The translations under genes were made by a program, and so were the position numbers. Of a stretch of 64,000 nucleotides of DNA, positions 5,330 through 60,505 are shown piece after piece; the first letter of the stretch is position 1, and each line of letters opens with the position of its first letter. The notes beneath the pieces are model-generated. The model made no database searches, was not told where the DNA came from, and worked only from the letters and a program-made list of their open reading frames with translations. The stretch comes from Mobula hypostoma. Taxonomy: Eukaryota. The stretch spans positions 109,120,001-109,184,000 of the forward strand of contig NC_086105.1 in assembly GCF_963921235.1 (NCBI RefSeq). The letters run 5' to 3'.

Positions 5330-6665
5330 AGCCAATTGTCAGTTGTGAAAGCCAGGAACCAAGTAACCAAGTAACTGTACACAAAAGAACAGTATGAGGG
5401 ACAAGAACAGGGCTGGACGACCAAGAGAAAATTAGGCCCACAACCAGGACAGTGTCCAGCAAGTTCAGAAATTTAGATGGAAAGAAGGATATTTGATCAG
5501 CAATAGATCAAAAGGGCTGCTTCTGTGCTGCCAAATGTAAAACATTTGTTGTCAGTTCTGATAGAATTCATTAATCTAAAACATTAAAGCCATTTTCCTA
5601 TCATCACTTGGGTTTTTGACATTTTTTGATTTTTCAACATCCGTTCCCTAATGTCCAATTATTGGTATGCAGGTTTTATCAGCCACAAATAAGAACAGTG
5701 GGCAATAAGCTTAGCATACCAGTTAATTTTGGCACACTTATCTTACCAACAACAATAGATAATGCTGTTGGTAACTTTCAGAGTATGCCACACTCAAACT
5801 GGTAAGCCACTCACTGTAAACAATGACAGCACCATGAAACACTGCTTATTGTCCTTTTAGTCACTGCTGATATCAACCCAAAATTTGAAGTACCCACATA
5901 CACAGTAGCTTGTAAAAAGGTATCAACACCAGGTGGGAGGTACCAAATGATAGCACTCCATTTAATGTACTTCATATTAAATCAAAATGCTGAAATCTGG
6001 AGCAGGAATTTGCTGGAAGAACTCAGCGGTTCATGCAGAATGCCTGGGAGAAAAAAAAAATCCACCACCTTTCAGGTCAAGATCCTTTATCGCTCTTCCA
6101 ACAGATTGCTGCTTAAGGCGGTGGTATTGATCATTAAGGACCCTCATCATCGGGGATGTGGCCTCTTCTCATTTCTACCATCGGGGAAAGGCCCACACTC
6201 AACAATTAAAAACAATCGCATTCTTCCCCCCCACACACACACACACTATCAGATACCAAAATTCATGGATATGACTTCGTTTTGTGCTACACTATTTTGT
6301 AGTTCAGAACAATACTCTGTACCTTTAAACTGCATTATTACCGTAAAATGAAGGCTTTCACAACTACATCATAGATAACAAAGAGAATATATTCTTTAAT
6401 TAAAGCTCAACAGGTGCAAACACTCACACTGTAATCTTAAGATTTAGAAAAAAAATCTCCCCCATTAAATTTTGAACTGCTCGTGATTATTCTGCACTAT
6501 TTTGTAATTTAACGTATTAAACATGTTCGTATACGCAGCACCTCATACTGCAAATAAGCGTGTTCGATAATGAGGTGTACTACTACAAAACCACTACAAT
6601 TTGTAGTTTTATACCGTGAATTATCAGACATTTACCTCACCTTCCTTAGACTGCGACACAAAAGG
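5330..6665 (-). ncRNA. Putative 5'TOP non-coding transcript, copy 1
   Basis: Exons 6665-6641, 5813-5747 and 5374-5330, with AG acceptors and donors GTGAGG, GTAAGA and GTAAGT. Confidence 0.5.
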
Positions 6666-6895
6666 CCGCAGCACCGCCGAGCTACCGATTTATACCACTA
6701 CAGCGTCGTCACCACACCTCGTTACCCACCCCAACACTGAATAACACATTAATACAAGCTTGTTTGAGACCGTTGAATTGCTCCATGCTCGGTCTGGGCC
6801 AGATAATCTCGGTTGGTTAATCTCGCGAGATCTCAGAAGCTTTAATAGTGGCGCGCGCCGCAGCTCGGCTTTCTGTGGAAAATTATCAGGTAATT
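6586..6895. promoter_or_regulatory. Bidirectional promoter, copy 1, with RPS2 exon 1 (6869-6889)
   Basis: TCTCGCGAGA at 6821-6830; minus-strand TATAAA at 6694-6689; CTTTCTGTGGAAAATTATCAG|GTAATT keeps a GT donor. Confidence 0.75.
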
Positions 6896-7044
6896 AGGTT
6901 GTTGGGAGATCCTCGGTAATTGGTGGCTCAGGCCGGGAAGCAACCTTCTCCAATTAATAAAGCTTATTTTGTCCCCAATGCGAATCTAATCGATGGCGAG
7001 GAGTTTAATACTGGCCGAGTTCTGGGGCTTCTATACCCCGATTA

Positions 7045-8678
7045 TGAAAAATTACTTGGACCTACAATGTTCTTCTTAATTTCTGGTTTTTCGCCTCGAT
7101 TGTCTTCAAAGAATTCCTGAATATACTCAGTCCATTTGTTCATAATCTCATCTTTTGCCATGATAATGGTACCGTCCTTTGCTTTCAAACATCCACCTGA
7201 AGAACAGAGGAGCTTTTTACCAGTGATATTCTTGAAGTTGGTAATGCAATAAATACGATGAAGAAAGGAAAGGCAGCAGTTCTTGATTATCGCATTTGAA
7301 GATTACGGAATTGAAAAACTTACTGATTTATTCAACGACATTAATGAGACTGGAATAATACCAGAAGAGATGAAAAAATCAGTATTTATTACTCTTTCTA
7401 AGAAACATGGAGCAATAGAATGTGAATTACATAGGACCATAAGTTTAATGAGTCATATCACCAAGATACTTCTAAGAATTTTGATGACAAGGGCTAAAAG
7501 TAAGATACAAGCTGAAATAGGTAAAGAACAATGTGGTTTTGTGAAAGACAAAGGTATAATGAACACGATATTGATGTTAAGGATACTATAAGAACGAGCT
7601 ATTCAAGTGCAAAAAGATTTGTTTGTTTTATCGACTACACAAAAGCATTTGATGAAGTGAAGCACAATAAGTAATTTGAAATATTACAGGAAACTCTAGA
7701 TCTAGGTTTGAAAAACCTCCGACTAATCAGAAATCTGTACTGGGAACAAACTGCCGCTGTAAGAATAGATGGAGAAGTGAGGCAGCTTACGAAAATCAAG
7801 AGAGACCTTAGACAAGGGTTTGTTTTCTCCCCTGATTTGATTAATATGTACAGTGAAACAATATTACAAAAAATAAGAGACATCTTGGGGATCAAACTTG
7901 GTGGTGAAAACAATAATTTCAGATACGTGGATGACAAGTACGGAGGAAGAACTACAAAACTTAATATAGTTGTTGAAGAAAGTGCAAAAATGGGTCGGTC
8001 TATCAATCACAAAAAGACAGAATGTATGGTGATATCCAAAAAGAAGGAGAATCCTATCTGCAGGCTGAAAATAAATGGGGAAGACATAAAACAAGTACAG
8101 AATTTTTGCTACTTAGGAAGCTGGGTGACATCAGATGGCAGGTGCGACATGGATATCAAAAGAAAAATAGGGATGGCATTTACGAGAATGAAGAGTATAC
8201 TGACCAATACTAAACTAGGCATGACAACCTGCCTCAGAGTACTGAAATGTTACGTTTATCCAGTTATGTTATATGGATCAGAATGTTGGACAATATCTAG
8301 TAACATGAGGAAACAAATTGAAGCAGCAGAGATGTGGTTTTTGAAGAGGATACAAAGAATATCATGGACGAAATGAATATCTGACAAGGATGTCATGAAC
8401 AGAGCAAGCACAAAAAGAGAACTAATGTATGAGATCATGAAAAGGCAACGTAACTTCATTGGACATGTGATTAGGAAAGAGGAGTTAGAGTGCACGGTAA
8501 TTATGGGAAAGATTGAAGGGAAGAAAGCAAGAGGAAGGCAAAGACAATTGACATTGGAGCCAGCAGCCAGAGAGCTGGAAATGAATACCAATGGATTGAT
8601 CCACTTGTCTCGAAACAGGAGTGTGTGGGCCATGGCAGTCAAAGCTCAATCTGGGCATGGCACCTGATAATGATGATG
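7045..8678 (+). mobile_element. RTE-clade LINE, 5'-truncated, with 5' inversion
   Basis: RT fragments in ORFs 7283-8667 (EQCGF..., RQG..SP.L.N.Y.E, RYVDD); (TGA)n tail; TSD ATACCCCGATTA 7033-7044 / ATACCCTGATTA 8679-8690; empty site in copies 2 and 3. Confidence 0.92.
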
Positions 8679-11600: not shown

Positions 11601-12370
11601 TCACAATACCTTTCTAAACATAGATGTGTTTTGCCTTTTATTGCAGTCAGCTTCCAGCGCAATCGGTTCTAGTTTAGTGTGTCCACGACTGGCCCGTGCC
11701 ATTCAGCTCTTTTTGATTACAATTCCATTCACTCATTACAATTTCTCTGCACTCCATAGGCTTCTACATTGTTGGTTTGTTTTATAGTACAACCCCCCCA
11801 TTCTCAGCTCAGCAACTGTGTTCGCGTGCCTACAGATAGAAGTATCCTGCGTGTTACAAAGGATTTTGTCAGCGAAACGTGCCTTGTAACAGATTAATCA
11901 AGCTTCCACATATATAATTGGAGGTCGAGGCGTAACAACTTGATCAGGGAGAGACAGAATTTGCTTTTTATCCAGTTGAAATACAGTTATTGACGTTTCA
12001 CCAGAATGGAATTGGCTGAGGACCAGGAGCCGGAACAGGTAAGGGGCTGTAGTGTACTATGACTGTAAAGAAGTTATGTACTCTTGCATATATGATTTTA
12101 TGTGTTAAATTTATTTTAAAATAGAAGGTACTCATAAACTGACCTGTCGAATTGAGCTAACTGTAAAAAAAAGTCTGAGGTGTTTCGTTAGATGGTCTCC
12201 AGCATTCTGTGTATGTTTCCCTACTAAATGACTATTTCCATTTAATGCGATTTTTATGTTTTTTTATTGTGGTTAAATATTACTTTTCAGTGTTTCAGTG
12301 TACTGACCGTGATATAAATGAGATGTTCCTCAGTCTCTTTATCAGGCGTCCTCAATCATCAGAGGCAAAG

Positions 12371-17129: not shown

Positions 17130-18725
17130 TTTATACTTAATCCTTAAAAATAAGCTGGGGAATGCAGAAACAATCTCCAAAAACACCAAAACAAAAAAAA
17201 TTAAACAGAGAAGAATGCCTATGTAATCTCTAACGAAGAAAAATCAGCGCCAATTTCCATTTAACTTTCATGACCAATGAAAAACTGTTTTTAGAAAAAA
17301 ACTAAATATCTATCTACTAAGCACTCCCAACTATTTATATATAAGTTAAAGTCCTTATGAACTATGAAAACTATCACTTAATTAATGAAAAAAAAGAGGA
17401 TAAAAACAAATAATCAAACTGGTTAACAATCTGTCCACTGTGTTAATTTGCTCAGTAAACCAAACAGATTTCGGAAAAGTCATTCATCAGTCACATCAAA
17501 AAGTTCACATCTTCTTTAAATAGTCCATCGATCAAAGGACATCTTAAGCAAATCAAAAATCTTCAAAGCTTGTTTTCTTTCCGAAATAACAATTATTCAG
17601 CAGACCTAAAACCATTCAAACCTTGGCTGCAACCAAAATAGAGTTAACATAGTCCAATGCCGCTTTGGAATCCAGAAAGACAGTGGAGTCGAATCTTTGG
17701 GAAATAATTTTAATCGGGCTGGATAGCGAAGTGATGGGAATAATCCCTTATCATAGGCTATCTTCATGGTTGGAGCGAATTTAGACCACAGGTCCATAAC
17801 TTCCCGTGGATAATCTTCATAAAAACAAATCTTGGAGCCCTTGAATTTAAAAACTCTGTGTTTCCTTGCATATTTCATGATTTGGTCTTTAACTTTGAAA
17901 CGAAGAAAGCAGACCTAAACTGACGTTGTTTTATACAGATCCTGAGATTTCGAAGTGAAAATTCTATGCGCTCTTTCAATATCGGGAGGTTGAGGTAAAA
18001 TATCTGGAAACAGAGACTGAAACAAGTTAGCAAATTAGTCCAATTAATCCCCACTCTCAGATCTTTCCTTCAGTCCAACAATTCGAACAGTATTCTGACG
18101 AGATCTTGCTTCCAAATCGATAATCTTATGTTGAGAGTTTTCCAAGCGGGCTGAAATATCCGCTATCTGACGCTTTGTCTCTTTAAGATCAGAATTCAAT
18201 GAGATAATATTTTCCTGCACAAATTGAAAACTGTCTAGTAACGACTTCATCTCAGAAGAGGTAGCATCAAGTTTTACCGTGTTGTTGTCTATTTTCCTGT
18301 CGAGAGCCATCAGTGTATGTTCTAAACGCTGAGCCCAAACAGGCATATCCTCTGATTTTCCTTCCGAAGTTTTCCCCTTTCCATTGCTGGATTCAGGAAG
18401 CTGATTTCCACTTCTTAAAGCTTGTGACATAACAATATATTTCCCTTAAGATCTGACAAATAAAAGTTAAAAATTCAAAGTTTAAACTGGGGAAGAGGAA
18501 GAATTAATCGCAGCTACACAAAATGTGTGTCACTCCATTGGGCAGTAGGCAGTCGGAGACTGTTAAATGTTATATATTCATCCTTTTCTAAGACTCCCCA
18601 GTGTGTTGTCTCTCGATGCTGAAAAGGCATTTGACAGAGTTGAATGGAAATACTTATTTAAAGTTTTAGAGAGATTCGGCTTTGGTATTAATTTTAATAA
18701 GTGGATCGGAATTATATATATATAT
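17130..18725 (-). mobile_element. L1-clade LINE fragment: 5'UTR and ORF1 on -, short ORF2 RT piece on +
   Basis: ORF1 pieces 18430-17606 (LEARSRQNTVRIVGL, FYEDYP...YPARL); RT motif [14 protein letters not shown] at ~18604-18645 on +. Confidence 0.9.
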
Positions 18726-19427
18726 ACTTTTCCACTCAAACAGTATGAAAAGCACAAAGCTACTTGTGAATATCGAATAGTGAGCTGCAGGTATGAAGGG
18801 TGTGCCACTGAAATGTTTCATAAGAACATTGCTGCTCACAAATAAGTTTGTGAACATTGGAACCAGCCATGCAGGATGGGATGTGGAGTCCAACTTAGCC
18901 GGAACCAGTTAGAGGAGCACAACTGTTACAGGGACACTAAAAGAAAATACAAGGGAAAGATTACAGTTCTTAAAAGCTGCTTGAGTAGTATGCACCATCA
19001 TCTAGAGTTAGTAGAAGAAACTCCGCAGAGTTTGACTGCCGACAATCACTTGCAGCTGTTGGAATCGTGTGTTTGTGAAGATGCTGGTGAGTAATTGCAA
19101 ATTATTGCAGAATAGATTAGATTCTGAGCATAGTTGCAAAAGAGCAACGAGGATTGAGTTTAAATTTTGTGTAAGGTAGCGTTTAATACTTTAAACCATA
19201 GAAACCGCTAAATTTTCTGTCATATCATGCTGGGGAGACAGTAAACTCAATGTTTTTCACATAATTTTGTGGCAATTTATTTGCATTGATTTAAATGGAA
19301 GATTGGAAATCCTAGCTTTTAATGAGAGAGGAATGTATAAAGGTCTTTTTTTTAATCTCTCATTTGCTTTTAAGTTCTTTCCCAATATGTAACATAGACT
19401 GTTTTTTTCTGACAGCTGCAGAATGTA

Positions 19428-22831: not shown

Positions 22832-22892
22832 GTGTTATACCTAGTTATACATATGTGCCTATGTGTTATACCTAGTTATACATATGTGCCTA
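22832..22892. repeat. ~31-bp tandem duplication
   Basis: gtgttatacctagttatacatatgtgccta occurs twice. Confidence 0.85.
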
Positions 22893-36854: not shown

Positions 36855-37018
36855 CAAAACCACTACAATTTGTAGTTTTATACCGTGAATTATCAGACAT
36901 TTACCTCACCTTCCTTAGACTGCGACACAAAAGGCCGCAGCACCGCCGAGCTACCGATTTATACCACTACAGCGTCGTCACCACACCTCGTTACCCACCC
37001 CAACACTGAATAACACAT
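36855..37018 (-). promoter_or_regulatory. Minus-strand TATA/TOP promoter and exon 1, copy 2
   Basis: Identical to 6586-6749 and 60198-60361. TATAAA at 36963-36958; exon 36934-36910. Confidence 0.7.
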
Positions 37019-37024
37019 CAATAC

Positions 37025-38137
37025 AGGCAACACACACAAAATGCTGGTGAATGCAGCAGGCCAGGCAGCATCTATAGCATACAGTCATCGTTTTGGGTTG
37101 CGACCCTTCGTCAGGACTAACTGAAAGAAGAGAGGGAAAGAGATTTGAAAGTGGGAGGGGGAGATCTGAAATGATAGAAGACAGGAGGGGGAGGGTTGAA
37201 GCTAAGAGCTGGAAAGTAGATTGACAAAAGGGATACAAGCTGGAGAAGGGAGAGGGTCATGGGACAGGAGGCCTAGGGAGAAAGAAAGGGGAAGGGGAGC
37301 AACAGACAAAGATGGAGAACAGGCAAGGAGTTATTGTGAGAGGGACACTGAAAGAAAAATATAAATAAGTAATAAATTAGGGATGGGGTAAGAAGGGGAG
37401 GAGGGGCATTAACAGAAGTTAGAGAAATCAATGTTCATGCCATCAGGTTGGAGGCTACCCAGACGGAATATAAGGTGGTGTTCCTCCAACCTGAGTGTGG
37501 CTTCATCTCGACAGTAGAGGAGGCCATGGATTAACATATCAGAATGGGAATGGGATGTGGAATTAAAATGTGTGGCCAGTGGGAGATCCTGCTTTCTCTG
37601 GCGGACAGAGCGTAGGTGTTCAGCAAAGCGGTCTTCCAGTCTACATCGGGTCTCGCCAATATATAGAAGGCCACATCGGGAGCACCGGACGCAGTATATC
37701 ACCCCAGCCGACTCACAGGTGAAGTGTTGCCTCACCTGGAAGGACTGTCTGGGGCCCTCAATGGTGGTAAGGGAGGAAGTGTAAGGGCAGGTGTAGCACT
37801 TGTTCCGCTTGCAAGGATAAGTGCGAGGAGGTAGATCAGTGGGAAGGGATGGGGGGACGAATGAACAAGGGATTTGCGTAGGGAGCGATCCCTACGGAAA
37901 GTGGGGGGGAGGGAAAGATGTGCTTAGTGGTGGGATCCCGTTGGAGGTGGCAGAAGTTATGGAGAATTATATGTTGGACACAGAGGCTGGTGGGGTGGTA
38001 GGTGAAGACAAGGGGAACCCTATTCCTAGTGGGGTGGCAGGAGGATGGGGTGAGAGCAGATGTGCGTGAAATGGGAGATGTGCATTTGAGGGCAGAGTTG
38101 ATGGTGGAGGAAGGGAAGCCCCTTGCTTTAAAAAAGG
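37025..38137 (-). mobile_element. Penelope-like element with GIY-YIG endonuclease, inserted in the copy-2 bidirectional promoter
   Basis: ORF 37409-37735 GVIYCVRCSRCGLLYIGET...RFAEH; empty site 'aatac|aagcttg' in copies 1 and 3. Confidence 0.93.
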
Positions 38138-38554
38138 AAGCTTGTTTAAGGCCGATGAATTGCTCCATGCTCAGTCTGTGCCTTCACATCCCTTCTGCTC
38201 CGTTTGGGCCAGATAATCTTGGAAGCTTTCATAGACGTGCGCCAGAGTTCGCCCTTCTGTGGAAAATTATCACATAAGTAGGTTGTTGGGGGATCCTCGA
38301 TAATCCCTGGCACATCCCAGCCATCTGCCCTTCAGGCCGGGAAGCACCCTTCTCCAATTAATAAAGCTTATTTTGTCAGCCTTTTTTGTGCCCGATGCGA
38401 ATCTAATCATTGGCAAAGAATTTAATACTGGCTGAGTTCTGGGGCTTCTATACCCCAATTAGGCCAAGAGCCAGACTGGACTAGCAACCACGTTTATTTC
38501 CGTACAATAGTGAATTGTATCTGTTTTCTTGTGTGAAAAACAGTTCCCAGCCCT

Positions 38555-38960
38555 GCACTGAGAGCAGTAAGCATAAAGGAGTTGGGTGCTTATTGTTCTG
38601 GCTAACAACAGATGGTGCAATCTGGGGCATATTATGATTGAGGAACGTGTTTGCAGACTAGATATTGAACTTTTTACTGTTGGACTTCGGCCACATTCCA
38701 CCGTGATACAACACTTGGCAGCACGGGAGGTCGTTCCTGCCCGTGGCCATCGAACGAGCAGCTCCTCCCGTGGAGGGTCAGACACCCTGAGCCAAATAGA
38801 CTGGTCCTGGACTTATTTTCCATCTGGCATAGTTTGCATTTTGTTGTTTGATTGTTGGGGTTTTTTTGTATTGCTATATTTACGCTCTATTCTTGGTTGG
38901 TGCAGCTGTAACGAAACCAAATTTCCCTCAGGATTAATAAAGTATATCTATCTATCTATC
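38555..38960 (+). mobile_element. Internally deleted Rex1-like LINE piece
   Basis: Endonuclease-like NNRWCN...ELFTVGLRP fragment joined to a 3' end with AATAAA and (TATC)n; absent from copies 1 and 3. Confidence 0.65.
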
Positions 38961-39170
38961 TTAAAGGGAATCAAATTTCACTTAAGGCTTATGAAGAGAG
39001 TCTGAGCTATTCACATGCGGCTAGGCTTCAGTAGAAAGATGCATCAAAGGAAATTAAGCTGTAAAATATTTGATTTCACTTGAATCAACTTCACATCCAC
39101 GTCCACGCCTTTATTAACATATTCAGGAACTGTGATGAGAAGAAGCTTTATGCTTTTGCAGTTGTTAGCA

Positions 39171-41523
39171 TCTATGTACTACTAAAATTCTCATGCTCTG
39201 TTTGTCTGTTTGTGACCTCCAATTAGCCCAAATGGTGCATTACAGCAGCATTTTTTTGACTAAATCGACTTAAAATGCACTAACTTACAGAATGCATGCG
39301 AAGTTCAGGGTTATATATTCATATAAAATTGCTCACTCATCAATCAACAGGCCCCGCTTTCCACAACCCGAGCTGATTCCACCCTTCATGGAAACCGCGA
39401 CACAACACCACGATGCATGCGCAAGGCCAGCCTCAGCAGCACCTCATGATGCTCACAGCAGCGATGCCAACCGCACCAAAAGGGCAGGGCTATCGTGTCT
39501 ACTTAGGAGAGTGCCAACCACATCATCAGGAAAAATCAGCATCCTGGAGACTTTGGTGTTAACTGCTTCTTATCTTCTATCAAGCATTAGGGTAAAAAAA
39601 ATATGGACAGCCTAATTATGCCGCGTGGAAAGAGAAGGGGGACATTATGGTCAAGAGATTATGCCAAACGTCTTCGGGAAGCAGCATGGAGAGGGAGTCA
39701 GATGAAGACAATCAGATGAAGCCAGGGCCGCACAACTCCAGGTTCAAAGAGTCAGGACAAAAAAGATGAGAGGAGAAGAAGAGACAGAGGAGGAGAGGCA
39801 TGCATGTCTCCAAAATGACAAGGGGCATGGAAGGAGGAGAGAACAAGAATCGGATCAGGCCAGGGCCGCACGACTCCAGGATCAGAGAGGAAGAACAAAT
39901 GGTAGAAGTGATGAAGAGACGAAGGATGAAAGGGCTGCGCTTCTCCAGAATGACAAAAACAGGCAGAGAAGGAGGAGAGAGGAAGAGACAGAGGAGAAAA
40001 GGAAAGATCAACTCGAGAATATGCGGCAAAGAGTACCCTATTGAATAATGAGCAAAGAGAAGTATATGAATATGTGTGCGACCGCATGGAAAGGAATCTC
40101 TCTTCAATGATTTTCACTAATGCACCAGGAGGAACGGGCAAGACATTTATCATCAACTTGATCCTCGCTAAATTAGGGGAGATGGAGGTGTTGCTATTGC
40201 TGTAGCATCATCAGGTATTGCAGCAACATTGATGCCTGGTGGTAGGACAGTGCATTCAAGATTCAAAATACCCCTCAAAGTCAATGAAGATGCCCTTTGT
40301 AACATTGATAAAAACACCAATACTGCAAATTTACTCCAAAATGCAAGCTTATTGTCTGGGATGAGAGCCCCATGATTAGCAGGGAGGGCTTCGAAGCCAT
40401 GGAGGACTCTACGTGATGTATGCGGCAAGAATGAAGCCTTCGGGGGTATTTTAACCATTTGCTGTGGCAATTTCCATCAGCTTCTAGCAGTTGTGAAATG
40501 CGGAAATGATGCTGATGTGGAGAATTCATGCATAAAAAAATCCTACTTATGGAGAAGCTTCATGAAGTTTCAATTGAAGAGAAACATGCGATTGAGTGAG
40601 GGAGAAGGATGATATTCTGAGTTCTTATTGGATGTTGGAAAAGACAACATTGAGAAAATGAAAACGATAAAATCGAATTATCTGAAGATATGATTCTGCC
40701 AGCAAAAACTATGGAAGAACGCATTAATTTCATCTTTCCGACATTCGACAATCCTGCAGAACTGTTCACGAGGAATTCAATCTTGGTTCCTCTCAAAGAA
40801 ATGATGCAAAAAATAAGCTTCACGTGCATTAGACGCTTCCTTGGAATCATGAAAGAATACTGTTCCTTCAATGCTGTAAGTGAAGGAGCTAACGCCACTC
40901 ATTTTCCAACAGAGCTCCTTGATTCAGTCGAACTACCTGGATTGTCACCACATAAACTGGAATTGAAGAGGGGATCTCCCATCATTTCAATGAAGAACTT
41001 GGATCCACCAAGGCTTTGCAATGGAATGCGAATGATGGTGGAAGAACTGCACGACAATCTCATTGTATCAAAGATAAACATTGGTGCGTTCAAAAATGAC
41101 ATTGTCATGATCCCAAGAATTACTCTCAGTTTATCAGAAGGGGAAGATGTCCCTCTTCAATGGAGCCAGTTCCCGATACAGTCATGCTTTGCCATGACCA
41201 TACATAAGGCCCAAGGCCAAACCATGGAGAATGTGTTGATTTATCTGGAGAAACCGCTATTCCAGCATGGTCAGCTGTATGTAGCTTTAAGCCGGGGAAA
41301 AAGAAATGAAAACGTTCAAGTACTCTTGAAGGGTGGCAGATCAACCAGAAATGTTGTCATCAAAAGTGTCCTTCATTAAACAAGGAGGAGCTATATTTGT
41401 CTTGCTACGCGTCTTTCTTCTTTAATAAACTGAGTTTTTCTTCTTTAATTTCCAGAGCACATCACATCAGACTGCACTACCTTTCTCTCAAAGGCTGCCC
41501 CAACGGGTCAACGGGTTGTCTAA
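39171..41523 (+). mobile_element. Helitron, internally deleted, with PIF1 helicase remnants
   Basis: A|TC ... CTAA|T termini, no TSD; empty site GCATTTTG in copies 1 and 3; motifs APGGTGKTF, LCNGMR, FAMTIHKAQGQT, HGQLYVALSR. Confidence 0.95.
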
Positions 41524-41710
41524 TTTTGTTTAAATATACAACAGCGTGTTTGAGTACAAAGTGCAGTGATTACAGGTGGAATTGGTATTGGTGTCGTGCT
41601 CGATGTTTATCCCTCCGTGATAATTGATGGAGCAATCAGCTTGGCTGTGTATTTATTGTAATGAGTGGGTAAATTTTCAGTGAGTAAATTGGCTGCTGTT
41701 GTCTATGATA

Positions 41711-44700
41711 CAGGGGCGGCGCTAAGGTGGTGCTAGCTGGGGCTATAGCCTCAGCAGAAATTGCAATAGCACCACCATAGCACCACCAAGAAATTAACTG
41801 CAGCTGCTTTGCTTTCTCTGTATAGTTTTGAATACAGCTTGTTTCTCCAATTGATCTAGTGAAACAGCGCCCCCAATTACCATAGCACCCACGCAGCAAT
41901 AAAGTTATAAACTCTGTCAGATCCACTCTACACTTCTGCTTATTCGTTCGTTGTCAATGTCTTGCCATTGCTGTCCTCAGATCAGTTAAGCTGATCTAAG
42001 ATCACTTAAGGTGGTGATGTCACTCACTCACTCACACGAGAGATTGATCGTATACATCCAGGCGCAGATCCGTGGTCTCGCGAGACTAACGGACGCCACA
42101 TGCGCACGTTGTGCTTTTACAAGCAAGCGTGGGCTTGGCACGTGCATTATTTTGGCCAGTGTGAAAAATGGATCGATTTTTAGTCAGAAAACGACCTCAT
42201 CCAGAGGAATCAGTGGTGTCTCAGCCTGAGCCTGTCTTAATTGAAAGTGACATGCAGAAGGAAGTAAGTTGGGATGAGGACGACAGCAGTTCATCGAAGG
42301 AGTGTGAGGGCGAAGTAGAGGAACAAGAAATGGAGCGGAATTCGGAAGAGAACATGGATGAAGCTGCTCTTAGTGCGAGTGGGAATACTGTTGGCGATGT
42401 TAGCCAGCAGTCTGAGGAAGGACCCTGTCGGCCAGCATTGAAAAAGTACCCTTCGCAACAGTTTGGCAATCAGCAAAGGAGTATGAGTGGCTGGTTTGAC
42501 CTGTACTCCTGGCTGGAATATTCAATCACAAAAGATGCTACATTCTGCTTCGCATGCAGGCATTTCCTGCGTGGAGGACATGGGTTCCATTCTGAGTCTA
42601 CCTTCACTGTCACCAGTTATCGCAACTGGCAGAAAGCTACAACAGTTTTCAAAACCCACCATGTAAGTGCAGCTCATAAGTTTGCTATGGAGGCACGGGC
42701 CGAATTCAGATTGAGAAAACAAGACGGTTCAAGATTGGGAAATGTGCTTGATTAAGGACATGCAAAGATTGTCCAAGAAAATCGTGAGTATATGAGAGCA
42801 GTGATTGAGTCTCTACACTATACTGCGTGCCAAGGTATTGCCCAGCGAGGACACCGGGAGAATGATGGATCTGGCAATAGGGGAAACTTTGTTGAGTTGC
42901 TCAGTGTAATTGGGAAATTTGATAAGACTGTAGCTAAAAAAAAGAGGACAATCCTGGAAATGCAAAAAACACCCATCACGATATCCAAAATGAAATTATG
43001 GGCATTATGGCAGATATGGTCAGACGTCAAATAAGTGCAGAAATCAAGCAGGCTGGATATTTTGCCATCATGGTGGATGAAAGTAAAGACTTGAGTAAAA
43101 AGCAGCAAATATCAGTGGTGGTGCGGTATTTGAATAACAAAACAGTGCTTGAAGAATTTGTGCACTTCACTCCAGCAGAAGGGTTGGACGCAGAGTCGCT
43201 TCTTAAAAGCATTGAACAGACACTCGCCCAGTGTGTTATTGATAAGAACGCGTGTATAGGTCAGTGTTATGACGGGGCAGCAGTGATATCCGGGTGCAAT
43301 AACGGGGTACAAGAGAGGTTCAGGAAAGAGGTCCCGCATCCCGCAGGCATTATATATACACTGCCATGCTCACAGACTTAACCTTGTTTTAGTGGATGTT
43401 TTGAGCAATGTACCACAAGCGGGTGAGTTTTTTGAAACTGTGCAGCTGCTTTACAACTTCTTTTCAAACTCTGTTGCCCACGATCTTTTCATGAAGAAAC
43501 AGAGAGAACTGGAATCAACCTGTGGAGTTGAAGAAATTGTCAGATACACACTGGGCATGACAGTATACAGCTTTGTGGGCTATAAGGAAATCACTCCCTG
43601 CTAATCTAGCTACACTACCAGATATTATGGGTCAACCAAATGCACGGAGGAAAACGGAGGCCAGAGTTGTAAATGGACTGATTGACAAGCAGTTTGCTTT
43701 ACTTCTCACTCTGTTTGAGGATTTATTCCGAGTCACCAAGTTCATGTCAAACCAGCTACAATTTCCCAGTTTGGAAATTTCATCCGCTGTGGACTTGGCT
43801 CAGTCTGTTATCGATGCACTCTCAGCAAAATGGGGAGAGGAATCATGGAGTGAAATTCAGTCAAGAGCTAGGGACCTGTGCGTCAAGGCCGGTATACAGA
43901 GCAGAACATATGAAAGGAGACAGGCCCAGCCACCCCGCCGCCTACGTGATTTTGGTATTGAGGCCCAGACTGAACGCACACCTGTCACATCCTCTGATGA
44001 CCTTCGCAACCACTGTTTCTATCAAGTTATAGACAGACTTCTGACTGAAATGAAAAGACGGTTCTCAGTTGAGACTGGGAGTGTTCTGACTGGAGTCTCA
44101 GCATTGAGTCCCAAGCACAAGTTCTCCCTAGACATGAATTGTCCTTGGCCAATGGCCCAATACTGTGGAGTGACTGAAGTGAACCTGACTGCAGAGCTAC
44201 ATCAGGTTCGGCGTCTGCTGGAAATAAAACAAAAGCAAGGACAGACAGTGAATGACACAGTGGAATTTCTAGCTCTAATGAGACCCTACCATGATGCATT
44301 TATAGATTTATACAAACTAATCTGCATATCATTGACTCTGCCTGTTACATCTACCTCATGCGAACGGAGTTTCTCTTGCCTCAGACGCGTCAAAAACTAC
44401 TTAAGGAATAGCAGCGGCGATGCTCAGAACAGCCAGTTGGCCGTGTTGGCCATAAACAGCCGGAGGACCAAGGCACTTGACATCCAGAAAATCATTGATG
44501 CTTTCACCACCAATCGCAACAACAGACGGATTGCGCTTCTCTGAAAACATTAATGGTGAGTGCAGTTGATTTTTTAAAAAAATTTGGGCCAAGACTAATG
44601 CTGATTATTATTATTATTTTGTGTTGGATACCCCATAGTCCTTATGTTTTCTGCAAATCCTAAAATATTACGTTTACTGCTATTAAGCCTACTGGTTTTG

Positions 44701-45264
44701 CTTAGACTTCCAAGCGGTGATTCTGTTGATTTTTGTTTTAAATTCAGTAGCCGAATTAATTGAGGTATTGCATGGTCAGAGTACGATTTGACCAACTCCT
44801 GGAAAAGCCTTGCATCTGTTGCTTGCCTTATTTGACTTTAATAACTGTGTATCTTTTGGCATTGCTGTCTATGTAATGCAAATAGCAGTGGGTTTGTGTT
44901 GTGTTTTTCAGTTGATAAGCACGCATTTGAGGCTGATTGCGGGATTGGTGCGTGATTCATGTTGTCCGCTGTTGCTCGGATGCTCTGTTTGTTTTTTTTT
45001 GTTTATGCTCCGTGTAGCCCAGGTTGCCGCTGATGCTGTTGACACTGTAACAGTTCACTTCTTTATTAGATCTATCAATTGCAGTTGCTTGTGAATCAAC
45101 AGAGGCATTTATAGTAGGCACATAACACTTGAAACTGACTTTTTAATGCCGCGCATCTGGCCTTGCGAATACATATTACCATACAGTGCATCCCTCAGCA
45201 CCATCACTGAATAATTCAGCCCCTCCGTAGCACCAGCAAGAAGAAACCTCTGGCGCCAGCACTG
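41711..45264 (+). mobile_element. hAT transposon (Tip100/ZMYM1-like), near full length, broken transposase
   Basis: 8-bp TSD CTATGATA at 41703-41710 and 45265-45272; imperfect TIRs. ORFs 42168-44544 carry a TTF-type zinc finger, RGH..NRGNF and CERSFS motifs, interrupted by stops and frameshifts. Confidence 0.95.
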
Positions 45265-47589
45265 CTATGATAGAATAGTGACACAGGCAAATGGTTTTTA
45301 AAGTGATTTCATTAAAATCTTTGAGGTCCATTAATAGTAGGCCAGTACTACATCCATTGGTGACTAAAAATTCTAACCCTTTGTATTTTTTTACTGTACA
45401 CCAACCATAGAGACACTCCCTTAGAGTCTGGAAGTTTTGAATCTGTTTCTTTAGTGAGAAACATAAAAAAGAAGGAATAGTAACCAGAGTTTTGTAATAG
45501 TGGTGATGATTTGATAGAGAGGTACCAGGATGTGATTTATAATAAAATCAGGGAATGCTATACTAGAACAATTTTATTTATGTGATGATGCATATTAATT
45601 GGTTTATTACCGTGGGTAATTATTGATTTAGATCTGTCTAGAATGTAGATTTTACTCTGCTTTTGAAATCTGAATGTGTTGCTACTACACACTGATTTAT
45701 TTTTTGCTTTACAGCAAATGGCGGACGACGCCGGTGGTAGAGGAGGATTTCGTGGTGGGTTTGGTTCTGGCGGCCGTGGGCGTGGTCGAGGCCGCGGTAG
45801 GGGTCGTGGTCGAGGCCGGGGTGCACATGGTGGTAAAGCTGAAGATAAAGAAGTAAGATTCACAATTGAGTAAATGAAATAATTCTTGACTTTTTTTGTG
45901 TACATGCACAAACTTGTTGTGGGGTTAGTTCTGAAATGTGTTCCTTACATCTCCGCAGTGGGTACCAGTAACAAAGCTTGGGCGCATGGTAAAAGATGTG
46001 AAGATCAAGACTCTGGAAGAAATTTACCTTTTCTCCCTTTCTATTAAGGTGAAGTCCTGACAATTTCATATTCTTACTATGACACATTTTTATAATTACT
46101 CATGTGAAACATTGTCCTGAGTTTAAAGCTTGTTTTTGTATAGGAGTCTGAAATCATTGACTTCTTCCTGGATTCAGCCTTGAAGGATGAAGTTCTCAAG
46201 ATCATGCCTGTGCAGAAGCAAACCCGTGCTGGCCAGCGCACAAGGTTCAAGGTCAGGGCTTTTGTCTCTAGATTACTATTGTACAAAGTGAATTATGTTA
46301 CTTATTTGAGAAGTAAATTTTAAATTTCCATTTAAAAATTTTCAGGCTTTTGTTGCTATTGGAGATTATAATGGCCATGTTGGATTGGGTGTCAAATGTT
46401 CAAAAGAAGTAGCCACTGCCATTCGAGGAGCTATCATTCTGGCAAAACTATCTATCATTCCTGTACGACGTGGTTATTGGGGTAACAAAATTGGAAAACC
46501 ACACACTGTACCTTGCAAGGCAAGTTCACGTACTGATTTAATTCTTCATTTAATGTGGTAAGGTTTCAGTTATATTTGTGGTTCTGTGAAGACAGTGATA
46601 TAGCAAATACCTGACACAACATAAATAATTAATTCAGACAATTGTTTGGAATTTTGGCTGCATTAAGTGTATGTATAAGGGTTAATAAAGGGGTATGTAT
46701 GGATCCAAGTGGCTGTTCTACCATTAAGAGAGTTGCATGTACTTTCTCCCTTTAGGACAGAGAAAAGGAATGATACTCTGGTATGGAAAGATAATTGACA
46801 TGACATGTATTATAATGTAATTTTAAGCAGTGTTACCTGCATATTATTTTTATATAGCCCTCTGTCCAAAGCCATTGTATCTTTTGCACGCTATATTACA
46901 GGCATATTGCTCACCATTTTCATTGTAGTCTGAACAAAACTTTGCATAACTTTGTTTAATGCCAGGTCTTTGGGTAGAAAGGCCAGCATTTCTAGCTTTT
47001 TTTGATTCAGTCCCTGCCAATATTTTAATGTGTACGCATGTTAAAAGTCCATTTTAAAATGGACTTTTTCTGCCCTTTTCAGTTCCTTAGTGGTTGCCTT
47101 CTGCAGTCTGTTCCGATGAAGGAACTTTTCCCTGAAATGTTAACCTTTTTGCTCTTGCCACACATGCAGCCTGACAGGATTATTTTGTGGTTTTATTTCT
47201 GGTGTGTCACTCTCTGGCTGTTCACCTGCATTGGTCCTAAACATAAAAGGCGCTGACTTCTGACAATGATTCTTAGTCTGTAGAGGTTGCATGTTTTCAA
47301 ACAGTATCTGTCTTGCTGTGGCCCTGGTGCGAATTGCACCAAATTGAGTCCGATTTATGCGAAACCTGTTTTTGTGGTGCACTTTCTGCCTGTGCCAGTA
47401 TGAATGCCAGTGTCACAATGTTTCTTAGCCATTTATTCATCTGCTTATCCCAAATGCTAGTTGCCATGTGGCAGTGGTAAACAAAATGCAGGCAATATCT
47501 CAAGCCTGCTGTAAAATGTAGGAACTCGCATCCAAAGTAATGACAACTGTGTCTTTCCAATCAAATGTACTTTCTATATGGCTTGAAGT

Positions 47590-53936: not shown

Positions 53937-54408
53937 TAGTCTCAGCACTGGTACCCAAGAAACTACTCCAGATGGCTGGTACTGATGATTGCTACACCTC
54001 AGCCAGCGGCTGTACAGCTACACCGGGCAACTTTGGCAAGTCAGAATCCTGATCTTGGCAATAGCATTTCTGTTTATTTTTATGTGTAACTTTTGTGGAA
54101 AAAGTTGTGAATCACTTGGTGTTGGAGTTGTAATTGTTTGAAGGTAGAACAATATGAAATTCAAGCAAACAACAGGAATTCTGCTAAATTATTTGTTTAC
54201 TGGCACCAATGTTAGTAGTAGTTGGAAACCATTATAAATTATGTGACTTTATCACTTAGTTATGCTCAGTATAAAATATTTTTTGTGTGTCTTAGTTCTA
54301 CATAATTTAAGCTGCTGGTCTGTAATAGTGAGAGAGGGAAATGGAAAAAAAATGTTTTTTTTAAAAGGTGAACACTGAATTTCAAGTTTCATTTTTGAAA
54401 CTAACTGA

Positions 54409-54555
<147 letters not shown>

Positions 54556-56848
54556 TGAGAGGTTCTGATATGTGTATAAAGTCACGAGTTTGTTTTAGTA
54601 TTATTGACTTAAACTGAACATGATTATAAAAATAAAATGATTTGCAATTTTTAAAAAATTCAGTCATTAACTTTTCAATGTCAGTACTAAATTGAACCAT
54701 GCATAATAAATTACATTTTTAATTAACTTCTAGGTAATACACTTTCATTTGTATTTAGTGTTGGTATCTGTTTCATTGGTCAGCATTGCCAGCTTTCAAA
54801 TATTTGTTTTTCCTTTTTAGAAGTTCACTGATCACCTGGCCAAAACTCACACCCATGTGTCTGTTCAGAGGTCCCAGTCTGCAGTTGTTCAAGCAACATA
54901 AGCATTTATGAAAGAACTGATCTTGTGTTACTGTGTTCTGATATGATGTAATAGATTTTGAATGAAGTATGTAGGAAGTTATAAATTACTTGCCAAATTA
55001 TTTTTATATGGCATGGGTATACAGGTAATATCAAATGTAGTTGCATTTTATATAATACCCTTTGGCTCTGTTGGGTGTCAATCAGGAGTTGTGAAAGGAG
55101 TCTCTGTCCTCCCTGTGGAATGCAAGGGTTTTCTCTGGTTTCCTCCCACAGACCAAGTGATGATAAACCTGATTCAGATATGGGTCTTTTTTTCTACTGA
55201 GTGGAAAGGGGAATTATGGTTGGGAAAAGGGGGAAGAGTGGGAAGCACCAGAGAGGCATCCTGTAATGATCAATAAACAAATTGTTGGAAATCCAATTTT
55301 CATGTGATTATATTTCTTTTAGTTGAATGGCAGTTATTGAATTTGCAAACTTTAATAAAACAATTTTATAGGTTGTATTTTGTAATAGATCTATGACCAG
55401 GTGCCCTGCATCAGCATCCTGATGATCCATACAAGTTCCTTGGTTTATGTATATTCATCTTTACTGTGCAAAATGTAGAATTCAGTGTATAGAATTGATC
55501 TGCAAACCCGCTGAAGCTCCATTTAATTATTTATTGACCTACAATGTGGAGCAGGCTCTTCTAGCCACACTGCCCACTAATTTTCTTGTCTATTGTAATT
55601 GAATTACTTCTGAACAGCATGTATATGCCAACTACATTTTGAAAGCTGGTTTCATGTACCACAATGATTAGCTCTAAAAGACTCTGGTGCTCTAAAGTGT
55701 TATAGCACTACTTCCGAACATCTGTATCTCACATTCTTGTTCGAGAATCAATACTTAAGATATTACCGATAAAACTTGTGATTTGACAAGTTTAGAACGC
55801 TTGGAAAGGGATCCAACAGGCACTCCAGAGGCTGAAGTCCATTTATTCCATCACCCCAGCTCTGCATGATCTAATAACAGATTTAGGCACCTGGCTTTCA
55901 ACTGTCAAGTACCAAAGTTTAATTTCATTCCCAAGCTATAGCAAAATCATCATGATTGTCAAGCATTCCATTGCATTAGTGCAAAGCAAAAAAACCTTCA
56001 TGTGCCCAATATCTGAAATTAAGCAGAAAATGATCAGAAACATTATGGTCAAGCAACACTCAATTTATATCTGAAACACCTGACACCTCAACAAACACCT
56101 TTTCTCAGACTATGAGTAGTAGTTCTTTATATTATTAAAAAAAGTCAGAACAGAGGGACAAAGGGAACATCAAGACAAAGTGCAATCATTCCTTCCCACA
56201 TTAGTCAGAAAACCAGCAGCAATGAAAGTATTAATTCAAGGTTGTTTTCTAATGTGGTCAAAAGATAGTGCTTAATTGAAAGAATAATGACAAAAACATC
56301 AAGCTATTCAACATGTCCACTATTGTTTTATTTCACTTCTAACAGCTAACAATTTCACCTAATCTCAGTACAAGTCTCTAATTTAGTTTTAAGAGCATTA
56401 TACAATTCAGGAATGGTAAATATACTGTTTCAATATCCACTCAGGTGTGGAACCCAGTGTAGTCTTCTGATGCTGTAACCCATCCACTTCAAGATTCAGT
56501 GTGTTGCATGTTCAGAGATCCCTTCTGCACATCACTGTTGTAACAGCTATTTGAGTTACTGTTGCCTTTACATCCGCTTGAACTAGTCTGGCCAATCTCC
56601 AGACCTCATTAACAAGGCATTTTCACCCACAGAACTGCCGCTCAAAGGAGGTTTTCTGCTTTTCACACCACTCTTTATAAACTCTAGAGACTGTTGTGCA
56701 TGAAAACCCCAAGTCAGCAGTTTTTGAGATGCTCAGACCACTCAGCCTGGCACCAATAAGCATTTCACATTCAAAGTCACTGAGATCACATTTCTTCTCC
56801 GTGCTGCTGTTTGGTGAGAACTGTACCTCTTGACCATTAAAAGATGTA

Positions 56849-57527
56849 CAGCGACATGCAAAAGTTTGGGCACCCCTGGTCAAAACAGGACTTTCCCCCC
56901 CAAAATGCATCAGGCTTGTTTAGAAGTTCCTTTGCAAACTTCTGACACTGAATTTTGTGGCGAGGATGCAGGAAAGGTTTTCTTCTGATGACTCTTCCAC
57001 GAGTCATATTTGTGCAAGTGTCGCTGCACAGTAGAACAGTGCACCACCACTCCAGAGTCTGCTAAATCTTCCTGAAGGTCTTTTGCAGTCAAACGGGGGT
57101 TTTCATTTGCCTTTCTAGCAATAATACGAACAGTTCTCTCGGAAAGTTTTCTTGGTCTCCCAGACCTCAACTTGACCTCCACCGTTCCTGTTAACTGCCA
57201 TTTCTTAATCACATTACGAACCGAGGAAACTGCTACATGAAAACGCTTTGCTATCTTTTTATAGCCTTCTCCTTCTTTGTGGGCATCAATTATTTTAATT
57301 TTCAGAGTGGAAGGCAGCTGCTCAGAGGAGCCCATGGCCACTGATTGATGGGACAAGGCTTGAAGCGTCAGGGTATTTATAAAGCTTTGAAATTTGCATC
57401 ACCTGGCCTTTCCTAACGCTGACTGTGAAGAAGCCATAGCCCTAACAAGCTAAAAGGTCTGAAACCTTGGTAAAAGTTATCTGAGAGCTCAGATCTCTTG
57501 GGGTGCCCAAATGTTTGCATGCCACTG
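56849..57527 (-). mobile_element. Tc1-family transposon, internally deleted (same site as 32126-33854)
   Basis: Same TIRs, TA TSD and flanks; the catalytic domain is deleted. Confidence 0.92.
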
Positions 57528-58930
57528 TACCTAACAAAGTGGCCACTGAGTGTGATCATGCTCTTGTGAAAACAATGGGCACACTTCAATCCATTAAACT
57601 TCAGACCTGTAACAAGAATGAAAAAAAAGGTAAGTACTTCTCTTCAAATTACAATTTAACAATTAATCAGACCTTGTGTACAATGGAATCTCAAGTTCAA
57701 ATGACCTTATAACCTTGCACTTTATTTACCTGCACCTTGTAATCACAACACTAATCAGTACTGTTATTGCTTTTCCCTTGTACTAATTTAATGTAATTAT
57801 GCCATGGACTTGCCTGTATAGATAGCCTCCAACATCAAACATTACAATAAACCAATTTAAACTGCTGAATAAAAAAGTGCAACAGAAGTGCTCAACAGGT
57901 CAAGGAAAATCAGAACAGAGTTAACATGACTCTGAGAAGGGAAAATAAAGTTACAGAGGATGGAAGGACAATAGACCCTTGTTTCTAATAGTGCAAGGCT
58001 CAGGTCTTTGAAATTCTAAGAGACCACCCAGTCAAATTAACAGGTGCAGTTAGAAAGAGCACAGAAGCTATGAATAGGGCAGCAAGAACAAAGCACAAGT
58101 TGCAAAATAGTGATTTTTTTTTCCAAGTGTGGGATTAACCATTACATTTTAAAGGTGAACAGATAATCTATCCTGGTGTGGGACAGTGCAATAAGGTCAA
58201 CACTAGTGGCAGTAATGCAGGTGGATTGAGGAGTCACACCTCTGGAACAGAGAACACAGTTTGCATTAACATACTGGGCAAACCTACAAGGGCATTACAA
58301 AGCAAGCAGATAAAACAGCAAAGCAGGCAACAAGATGAGAAGTGTATATCTAAATTACAGTAAAGGTGAAACAAAAATCATTAAAAGTGAAACAAATAAG
58401 TAGATAAAACAAAGGAATGAAGAGAACAGAAAGACATCTTTATAATATCAAGTAGTGGGAAGGTTGAGAAATGCAGGAGGGGGTTAATATTGAGTTTGAG
58501 GTTTGGGTGCATAAAGAAACACAAGAAAGTCTGCATTGGCTGGAAATCCAAAGCAACACACAAAATACAGGAGGAGCTCTGGTCAGGCAGAATCTATGGA
58601 AATGAATAGTCAAATGTAAACTATCTGTTTATTTCCTTGGATGCTGCCTGACCTGCTGAGTTGCTCCAGCGTTTCTGTTGTTTCTAATAAACAAATGGCG
58701 GGTGCAAGTACTGTAATCAACAGTTGAGTATGTACTGATAGCATCAATATAATCAACAGGATGCTTGATTTTAAAGTTATTACGGAATAGAACACTAACA
58801 GTATTTTGCAGAAAGGATCTCAGGATCATTGCTTTAAATATATAGTGCAGTTTTTAAAGAATACAGGTTTTTTAAAAAAATATAGAATTTGATTCAAATA
58901 AACATATAGGATTTAGATATCCTGACTCAC

Positions 58931-60277
58931 ACTCCAGTTCAGAAGGTGGCACTAAGATTGTAGGACTTGCAGCCAGTTGTCAGCTGTGAAAGCCAGGAAC
59001 TAAGTGACTGTACACAAAAGAACAGATGAGGGACAAGAACAGGGCTGGACGACCAAGAGAAAATTAGGCCCACAACCAGGACAGTGTCCAGCAAATTCAG
59101 AAATTTAGATGGAAAGAAGGATATTTGATCAGCAATAGATCAAAAGGGCTGCTTCTGTGCTGCCAATTATGTAAAACATTTGTTGTCAGTTCTGACAGAA
59201 GTCATCAATCTAAAACATTAAAGCCATTTTCCTATCAAGACATCACTTGGACTTTAACTTTTTTGACCTTTCAACATCGTTCCTTGCTGTCCATTTATTG
59301 GTATGCGGGTTTTATCAGCCACAAATAAGAACAGTGGGCAATAAGCTTAGCATACCAGTTAATTTTGGCACACTTATCTTACCAACAACAATAGATAATG
59401 CTGTTGGTAACTTTCAGAGTATGCCACACTCAAACTGGTAAGCCACTCAACTGTAAACAATGACAGCACCATGAAACACTGCTTATTGTCCTTTTAGTCA
59501 CTGCCGATATCAACACAAACTTTGAAGTATCTACATACACACTACCTTGTGAAAAGGAAGCAACACCAACAGGGAGGTACCAAATGATAGCACTCTATTT
59601 AACGTACTTCATATTAAATCAAAATGCTGGAAGAACTCCGCGGTTCATGCAGAATGCCTGGGAGAAAAAAAACAACCACCACCCTTCAAGATCCTTTATC
59701 ACTCTTCCAACAGATTGCTGCTGACGGCGGTGGTATTGATCATTCAGGACCCTCATCATTGGGGATGTGCCCTCTTCTCATTTCTACCATGGGGGAGAGG
59801 CCCACACTCAGCAATTAGAAACACTCTCTCCCCCTCCCCCCCACACTATCAGATATCCAAAATTCATGGATATGACTTCGTTTTGTGCTGCACTATTTTG
59901 TAGTTCAGAACAATACTCTGTACCTTTAAACTACACTGTTCCCGTAAAATGAAGGCTTTCACAACTATATCATAGATAACAAAGAGAACAGATTATTTTA
60001 ATTAAAGCTCAACAAGTGCAAACACTCACACTGTAACCTTGAAAACGATTTAGAAAAAAAATTCTCCCCACCATCAAATTTTGAACCGCTCGTCAATATC
60101 GTTCTGCACCATTTTATAGTCTAACATGTTAAACATATTTGTATGCGCAACACTTGATACTGCAAATAAGCGTTTTCGATAATGAGGTGCACTGCTGCAA
60201 AACCACTACAATTTGTAGTTTTATACCGTGAATTATCAGACATTTACCTCACCTTCCTTAGACTGCGACACAAAAGG
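58931..60277 (-). ncRNA. Putative 5'TOP non-coding transcript head-to-head with RPS2 (SNHG9-like position), copy 3
   Basis: Exon 1 60277-60253 (CCTTTTGTGTCGCAGTCTAAGGAAG|GTGAGG). Exon 2 59450-59383 (tttacag...|GTAAGA). Exon 3 from 59007 (cttttgtgtacag) to 58971 (GCAAGT) or 58931 (GTGAGT). No ATG in these exons. A possible terminal exon lies at ~56069-55900 with ATTAAA. Confidence 0.55.
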
Positions 60278-60505
60278 CCGCAGCACCGCCGAGCTACCGA
60301 TTTATACCACTACAGCGTCGTCACCACACCTCGTTACCCACCCCAACACTGAATAACACATTAATACAAGCTTGTTTGAGGCCGTTGAATTGCTCCATGC
60401 TCGGTCTGGGCCTGATAATCTGTTGGTTAATCTCGCGAGATCTCGGAAGCTTTAATAGACGCGCGGGCCGGAGTCCGTCCTTCTGTGGAAAATTATCACG
60501 TAAGT
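60198..60505. promoter_or_regulatory. Bidirectional CpG-rich promoter, copy 3
   Basis: TCTCGCGAGA palindrome (BANP/'Kaiso'-type motif common in ribosomal protein promoters) at 60431-60440. Minus-strand TATAAA at 60306-60301, 29 nt before CCTTTT at 60277. The divergent starts are ~200 bp apart. Confidence 0.8.
60479..60499 (+). other. RPS2: RPS2 non-coding exon 1 (pyrimidine start)
   Basis: CCTTCTGTGGAAAATTATCAC|GTAAGT. A short pyrimidine-initiated exon spliced to CAAATG resembles vertebrate RPS2. The exact TSS is inferred. Confidence 0.8.

Follow-up and report, generated by a model that had tools for sequence, protein, structure and literature searches.

The window analysed here is a stretch of 64,000 bp from the genome of Mobula hypostoma (NCBI RefSeq assembly GCF_963921235.1, contig NC_086105.1, positions 109,120,001 to 109,184,000 of the forward strand), and coordinates are counted from its first letter. 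It contains three tandem copies of a divergent promoter region, with the ribosomal protein gene RPS2 on the plus strand and, on the minus strand, a predicted counterpart of SNHG9, the host gene of the small nucleolar RNA (snoRNA) SNORA78. A block of 164 bp covering the predicted promoter core and first exon of the SNHG9-like gene is identical in all three copies, even in the one whose flanking genes are both defunct. With moderate confidence, we attribute this three-way identity to gene conversion between the copies, acting together with purifying selection on copies 1 and 3.

Identity and anatomy of the invariant block

The array was delineated by self-comparison of the window together with 20 kb on each side, and consists of a tandem segmental duplication with three units (Table 1). 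The initial annotation had described three identical blocks with nine CpGs each, and this description holds at every position of 6586-6749, 36855-37018 and 60198-60361. A search of the whole 3.48-Gb assembly returned exactly these three copies and none besides. The six differing positions claimed for the 45 nt beside the block (6541-6585), relative to copy 3, were likewise recovered. The positions of the individual motifs agree with the minus-strand order that had been proposed, namely TATAAA, 23 nt, CCTTTT...GGAAG, a GTGAG donor and a palindrome. In terms of the SNHG9-like gene, the block is made up of 84 bp upstream of the predicted start, including the TATA box, followed by the predicted exon 1 of 25 nt and 55 nt of intron 1.

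The surroundings of the block are far less uniform. Over 200-350 bp to either side, 12-20% of positions differ between the copies when substitutions are taken together with insertion or deletion events, and at flank rates of 0.12-0.20 events per site the probability of finding no change in 164 positions is at most 5e-10. The block represents the longest three-way perfect run in the array, and divergence along the array is highest in the flanks closest to the promoter. On the intron side, identity holds for 55 nt and is then lost abruptly, with four differences in the next 24 nt. CpG dinucleotides follow the same pattern: all nine are kept in the block, compared with four of nine in the left flank and three of 25 in the right flank, giving a total of 7 of 34 outside the block. 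CpG losses make up 15 of the 103 copy-specific substitutions in the flanks.

Directly to the left of the block (6464-6585), 22 substitutions within about 200 bp are private to copy 1. Further left, copies 1 and 2 differ by just 2-3%. Several of these copy-1-specific sites are CpGs that are kept in copy 1 and lost in copies 2 and 3. The excess in copy 1 may reflect an older duplication layer or conversion from another source.

The minus-strand unit as the SNHG9 counterpart

On the same strand as the predicted promoter, copies 1 and 3 carry the H/ACA snoRNA ACA64, each scoring well above the gathering score of 35 bits of its Rfam family, RF01225 (Table 1). The two copies differ at 2 of 130 positions and are the only full ACA64 copies in the genome. 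Their alignment to the model places AUA at the ACA box and an A-rich hinge at the H box. Copy 2 retains a short stump of the snoRNA; the counterpart of copy 1 positions 4964-5756 is gone from it, and with it the remainder of the snoRNA as well as candidate exon 2.

ACA64 is the older name of SNORA78/Snora78 (PMC12289781), and in mouse Snora78 is flanked by exons of Snhg9, which lies beside Rps2 (PMC10688608). Because of its position beside RPS2 and its SNORA78 cargo, the minus-strand unit is, as judged from sequence features, the SNHG9 counterpart, divergent from RPS2. The two predicted starts face away from each other in a head-to-head arrangement and are about 200 bp apart. Genes hosting snoRNAs typically start at a C within a pyrimidine run, the terminal oligopyrimidine (TOP) motif (PMC6954239), and neither the predicted exon 1 nor the candidate exon 2 contains an ATG. 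The same-strand ACA64 in copies 1 and 3 lends support to the proposal of the initial annotation that the block comprises the TATA/TOP core promoter and first exon of a putative divergent, non-coding snoRNA host.

No snoRNA other than ACA64 was detected with Rfam in the window, in positions 1-6700 at a permissive threshold or in 20 kb of flanking sequence. Two other readings of the unit were rejected. One took ACA64 to be SNORA64, which is hosted by RPS2 in human and chicken, and would have implied a switch of host; the literature, however, equates ACA64 with SNORA78. An RNA polymerase III promoter of the U6 type, composed of the TATA box and an upstream element, was also discarded, given the TTTT located 2 nt past the predicted start and the lack of a match to any RNA family.

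RPS2 survives intact in a single copy

RPS2 had been claimed to be truncated in copy 1 and pseudogenised in copy 2, and both statements are borne out. Copy 1 consists of exon 1 and intron 1 only, and ends at 9530, 90 bp before exon 2 would begin. Copy 2 has lost the splice donor of exon 1, its exon 6 is split and its exon 7 frameshifted, and exons 2-5 carry five non-synonymous changes at conserved residues. Copy 3, in contrast, is intact. Its exons 1-5 are connected by GT..AG joints in RNA-like contigs at depths of up to about 25,000, and exons 6 and 7, located past the end of the window (68091 and 69591 in extended coordinates), also read correctly. Elsewhere in the genome, a Pfam search for the ribosomal S5 domain gave a single match, a stop-containing site on another contig.

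In both copies that extend this far, RPS2 exon 5 is followed by GCAAGT (62400-62405 in copy 3 and 46520-46525 in copy 2), and the next exon continues in phase after a CAG. This suggests that the following intron, with a predicted length of about 5.7 kb, is of the GC-AG type. In copy 1, the orphaned promoter and exon 1 of RPS2 (6821-6891) point toward the RNF151-like gene of unit 2, which has its TRAF-type zinc-finger exons at 18567-19091 on the plus strand, and this orphan promoter may have been captured for that gene.

Signs of exchange between copies along the array

The relationships between the three copies are not constant along the array. When each variable position was assigned to the copy that differs from the other two, the odd-one-out pattern proved heterogeneous (chi-squared 121, 22 degrees of freedom, p 1e-15). 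Copy 3 is the usual outlier across the array; to the left of the block the outlier is copy 1 (23:9:7), and to the right of it copy 2 (11:37:16). The copy relationships therefore switch at the block itself.

A second sign of exchange is found in RPS2. Copies 2 and 3 share a perfect run of 195 bp that spans exon 5 of the pseudogene. Across exons 2-5, these copies differ by five non-synonymous changes and only one synonymous change, while their introns differ by 5.3%; 6.7 synonymous differences would be expected over 127 sites, and the probability of seeing one or fewer is 0.009. Such a pattern marks recent homogenisation with subsequent drift, rather than long purifying selection. A protein search with the open frame of exon 5 returned RPS2 fragments of many eukaryotes, among them none that shares the intron-coded flanks and no identifiable close relative. 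The block of copy 2 has likewise stayed perfect although neither flanking gene can work, the snoRNA and likely exon 2 being gone and RPS2 being dead. The abrupt loss of identity inside the intron and the 3-bp deletion that a related organism carries within the block also point toward exchange.

Among the observations that the initial annotation had named as speaking against its proposal are perfect runs of about this length in neutral parts of the duplication and evidence of a recent conversion tract or polishing artefact. In part, such runs are present, in exon 5 of the dead RPS2 gene (195 bp) and in a transposon fragment (142 bp). The latter, which is the second-longest three-way perfect run, had been considered as a neutral control that would overturn the finding on the block. 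We rejected this use, given that local divergence around it amounts to only 2-4%, which makes it a far weaker outlier than the block. Exchange between the copies is clear in the array, whereas a polishing artefact is unlikely. Since comparable perfect runs and signs of exchange coexist in the same array, a conversion tract appears to be the better reading of the identity. A literature search on the conversion of promoters gave nothing of use.

RNA-like contigs around the promoter

Four sequencing runs that contain spliced RPS2, and hence RNA, were aligned to 56301-62300; the resulting contigs are unstranded. Low, continuous and unspliced coverage at a depth of about 5-40 extends from 57657 to about 60273, and RPS2 intron 1 on the other side of the promoter is covered at a similar depth. 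Between them, coverage is interrupted from 60278 to 60478, which is precisely the interval separating the two predicted starts. The depth in runs X1 and X4 drops from 12-22 to less than 1 across 60300, and a contig of 1479 nt in X5 ends at 60273, 4 nt inside the predicted exon 1 with its CCTTTT start. The region of the candidate exon 2 shows a slight rise in depth in the bin 58901-59100 in X2, X4 and X5. When 13 words of the block were sampled, three to four of them were present in the RNA-like runs and all 13 in the DNA runs of the source sample; the former number is that expected if only the transcribed half of the block is present. The promoter reading of the block is thereby supported by position, without being proven.

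Contigs in these runs can also be attributed to individual copies. A contig in X1, at a depth of 11, carries the copy-1 letter at 16 of 16 positions, four of which exclude copy 2; sequence below the promoter of copy 1 is thus also present in these data. Among the contigs listed, none was of the copy-2 type. One low-depth contig in X2, from another individual, shows alternating patches of copy-1-type and copy-3-type letters over 57580-58096, which points either to a conversion between copies that is still segregating or to a chimeric assembly.

Contigs in X4 and X5 derive from a related organism and are about 3% diverged from copy 3. All of their depth carries a 3-bp deletion at 60205, within the palindrome, so this end of the block is not strictly required. 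Relative to copy 3, they also contain a 26-bp insertion at 59751.

Alternative explanations for the three-way identity

In the explanation that we favour, tandem segmental duplication gave rise to three copies of the divergent SNHG9-like/RPS2 promoter of about 200 bp, after which RPS2 survived in copy 3 only and the snoRNA gene in copies 1 and 3. Short-tract gene conversion, a form of concerted evolution, would have made the block identical between copies. This conversion would have been focused on a promoter core that selection had already kept similar, and would have dragged the dead copy 2 along, with purifying selection on copies 1 and 3 contributing as well. Purifying selection alone, keeping three minus-strand promoters in an array that is retained to supply the snoRNA host gene, seems unlikely to us, even though it would accommodate much of the data: the island without change between strongly diverged flanks, the complete retention of CpGs, the near-identical snoRNA in the only two full copies, and the presence of both copy-1-type and copy-3-type contigs in the RNA-like runs. 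Its main difficulty is copy 2, where the block is perfect without a snoRNA or a likely exon 2. Furthermore, the lack of any change over 164 bp, 55 nt of which are intronic, exceeds ordinary promoter constraint, when even the snoRNA itself has changed; a related organism tolerates a deletion in the block; and conversion is demonstrably active in the array. The earlier suggestion that the array is retained for its non-coding gene is accordingly a good fit to copies 1 and 3, and fails for copy 2 with its snoRNA stump, deleted exon 2 and perfect block. Several observations nevertheless weigh against conversion as the cause. It would need at least two recent events overlapping the same 164 bp, which keeps selection alone among the candidates. 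Where copies 1 and 3 match perfectly, the two longest runs correspond to the promoter block (183 bp) and to the snoRNA plus its flank (142 bp), as selection would predict, and words of the block were found in four other organisms, which could mean constraint across species. For the host gene itself, transcription and splicing are putative: the contigs are unstranded, and no minus-strand splice joint from exon 1 is among the joints listed (15 of 67), a result that is not evidence of absence.

Three further accounts do without either process on the minus-strand gene. A low input of mutations, as expected for an unmethylated and nucleosome-free promoter core in the germ line, would require neither selection nor conversion. 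The ratio of observed to expected CpGs, at 1.1-1.3 over the block and the promoters of copies 1 and 3 compared with 0.48 on the silenced RPS2 side of copy 2, points in this direction, as does the contrast in CpG retention between the block and its surroundings. Most changes in the flanks, however, are not CpG losses, and protection of CpGs therefore cannot bring the 146 non-CpG positions of the block to zero change; together with the strong divergence of the flanks nearest to the promoter, this makes the account improbable. We consider it quite improbable that the block is kept for use on the plus strand, where it would form the upstream part of the RPS2 promoter in copy 3 and would drive a transcript into the downstream RNF151-like gene in copy 1. 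The block does lie 118-281 bp upstream of the RPS2 start, and copy 1 does keep the TCTCGCGAGA motif, the character of a CpG island and the donor of exon 1. Yet copies 1 and 3 diverge by about 10% over the interval that leads from the block up to the start of RPS2 and includes its surrounding core, the plus-strand promoter of copy 2 is both severed by an insertion of 1.1 kb and decayed, and the block is centred on the TATA box and start of the minus strand. Finally, consensus polishing can yield exact identity in repeated DNA, and the complete set of 13 sampled words was found only in the DNA runs of the source sample, so that one version of the block might have been copied to three places during assembly. 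Such an artefact is very improbable because divergence in the flanks is strong and specific, insertions are private to each copy, and contigs of both the copy-1 and copy-3 types were recovered from runs of another study; the sharp limits at 164-183 bp are also not expected from it.

Gene conversion combined with selection on copies 1 and 3 thus remains our preferred explanation, and a more far-reaching version of it can be put forward only tentatively, as possible and rather doubtful. The two halves of the duplicated pair may have been resolved in opposite ways, with the dosage-sensitive RPS2 returning to a single copy and the SNORA78 host being kept as two working copies. The promoter core would then be a hotspot of exchange, and the pristine promoter of copy 2 would possibly still be firing.

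Comparison with known systems

The locus resembles mammalian SNHG9/SNORA78 in its position divergent from RPS2, its intronic ACA64 H/ACA snoRNA, its short exons without ATG and its start in a pyrimidine run, with the exons and the start being predicted in the present case (PMC10688608, PMC12289781). It differs in the length of the intron, which is about 1.2 kb here and a few hundred bases in mammals, and in the occurrence of the unit three times, with the snoRNA in two of them. The RNF151-like neighbour is oriented opposite to its human counterpart.

The predicted start at a C in a pyrimidine run and the predicted non-coding exons are also shared with 5'TOP snoRNA hosts such as GAS5, UHG and U17HG. 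In such hosts, the useful product lies in the intron and the steady-state level of spliced RNA is low (PMC6954239; Smith and Steitz 1998, Pelczar and Filipowicz 1998 as cited in PMC2653536). In contrast to GAS5, UHG and U17HG, the gene described here has a canonical TATAAA at -30 and shares its promoter region with a ribosomal protein gene. A second H/ACA snoRNA, U64 (SNORA64), is tied to the RPS2 locus in chicken and human, where it resides in RPS2 intron 5 (PMC2653536, PMC9454646). It is a different RNA from the one that Rfam names ACA64, and no U64/SNORA64 was detected with Rfam in the RPS2 introns here, in the window and the 10 kb beyond it.

Interlocus gene conversion in tandem duplicates, for instance in globin genes, produces the same short perfect tracts amid diverged flanks, the same shifting relationships between copies and similarly homogenised pseudogene exons. 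Unlike in these cases, the tract here consists of a promoter and a predicted first exon in three copies, one of which is dead on both strands. As a whole, the locus cleanly exemplifies known processes, namely concerted evolution and the conserved pairing of a snoRNA host with a ribosomal protein gene, and does not represent a novel type of element. It demonstrates that the head-to-head pair of SNHG9/SNORA78 and RPS2 is old and can be recognised from sequence alone, and provides a natural experiment in which one promoter exists in three duplicated copies with different genes surviving on each side. If copies 1 and 3 make SNORA78 and only copy 3 makes RPS2, the array would be an example of dosage constraints sorting the two halves of a bidirectional pair after duplication, and of a promoter being preserved by gene conversion once its genes have been lost.

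Organisation of the array and inserted elements

The features of the three units are compiled in Table 1.

Table 1 Units of the triplicated array and features of the promoter, snoRNA and RPS2 copies. Positions refer to the window; values below 1 or above 64,000 lie outside it.
Feature	Position	Strand	Remarks
Unit 1	~-17144 to 9530		RNF151-like gene, minus-strand unit, promoter, RPS2 exon 1 and most of intron 1
Unit 2	10938 to ~55156		Most complete unit, yet full of insertions
Unit 3	55581 to ~70225		Without RNF151 part; sole intact RPS2
Invariant block, copy 1	6586-6749	-	TATAAA 6694-6689; CCTTTT from 6665; donor after 6641
Invariant block, copy 2	36855-37018	-	TATAAA 36963-36958; CCTTTT from 36934; repeat insertion begins ~8 bp to the right
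Invariant block, copy 3	60198-60361	-	Identical to the other two copies; motifs read from sequence
TATA box, copy 3	60301-60306	-	TATAAA, 23 nt upstream of pyrimidine-run start
Predicted exon 1, SNHG9-like gene, copy 3	60253-60277	-	CCTTTT start, 25 nt, no ATG, ends GGAAG; GTGAGG donor from 60252
Palindrome ACTACAAATTGTAGT in intron 1, copy 3	60205-60219	-	Adjoins second TATAAAA
Candidate exon 2, copy 3	58931-59007	-	Pyrimidine tract and CAG before, GTGAGT after; unconfirmed
ACA64 (SNORA78) H/ACA snoRNA, copy 3	59293-59422	-	Rfam RF01225, 69 bits, model positions 1-128; ~0.85 kb below predicted start
ACA64 (SNORA78) snoRNA, copy 1	5657-5786	-	Rfam, 66 bits, full model; differs from copy 3 at 5658 and 5671 (59294 and 59307 in copy 3)
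snoRNA stump, copy 2	35052-35089	-	5' 31-38 nt only, 31 nt exact
TCTCGCGAGA motif between the two starts	60431-60440		Kept in copy 1 (6821) and copy 3, lost in copy 2
Orphan RPS2 exon 1, copy 1	6868-6889	+	GT donor kept; CpG observed/expected 1.14 over 6586-6900
Decayed RPS2 exon 1, copy 2	38252-38273	+	Donor GT>AT; CpG observed/expected 0.48 on RPS2 side
RPS2 exons 2-5, pseudogene copy 2	45715-46519	+	Exon 5 (46344-46519) within 195-bp perfect run common with copy 3
RPS2 exon 1, copy 3	60478-60499	+	Non-coding, CCTTCTG start; GT..AG joint 60499>61595 in run X5
RPS2 exons 2-5, intact copy 3	61595-61732, 61838-61925, 62021-62128, 62224-62399	+	GT..AG joints, translations
Interspersed-repeat insertion splitting copy 2 bidirectional promoter	37026-38137		Sequence comparison; ~1.1 kb
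Second-longest three-way perfect run, 142 bp	3338-3479	-	Inside Tc1/mariner-like transposase fragment; comparison only

In addition to the repeat that splits the copy 2 promoter, several insertions distinguish the units. Intron 1 of the SNHG9-like unit in copy 2 holds an insertion of 1 kb, and RPS2 intron 1 of the same copy one of 6.7 kb (38555-45264). Long open frames within the latter resemble, by appearance, a Pif1/Helitron-type helicase (39954-41376) and a hAT-type transposase (42165-44541). The remnant of RPS2 intron 1 in copy 1 is interrupted at 7045-8678 by an insertion with reverse-transcriptase-like open frames (7262-8664). Lastly, intron 1 of the SNHG9-like gene in copy 3 contains a short element at 59760-59830 (around ...CCCCGATGGTAGAAATGAGAAGAGG...), which is covered by contigs at a depth of 800-2400 that carry the letter of copies 1 and 2 at 59791. 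This element is probably a dispersed repeat rather than an exon.

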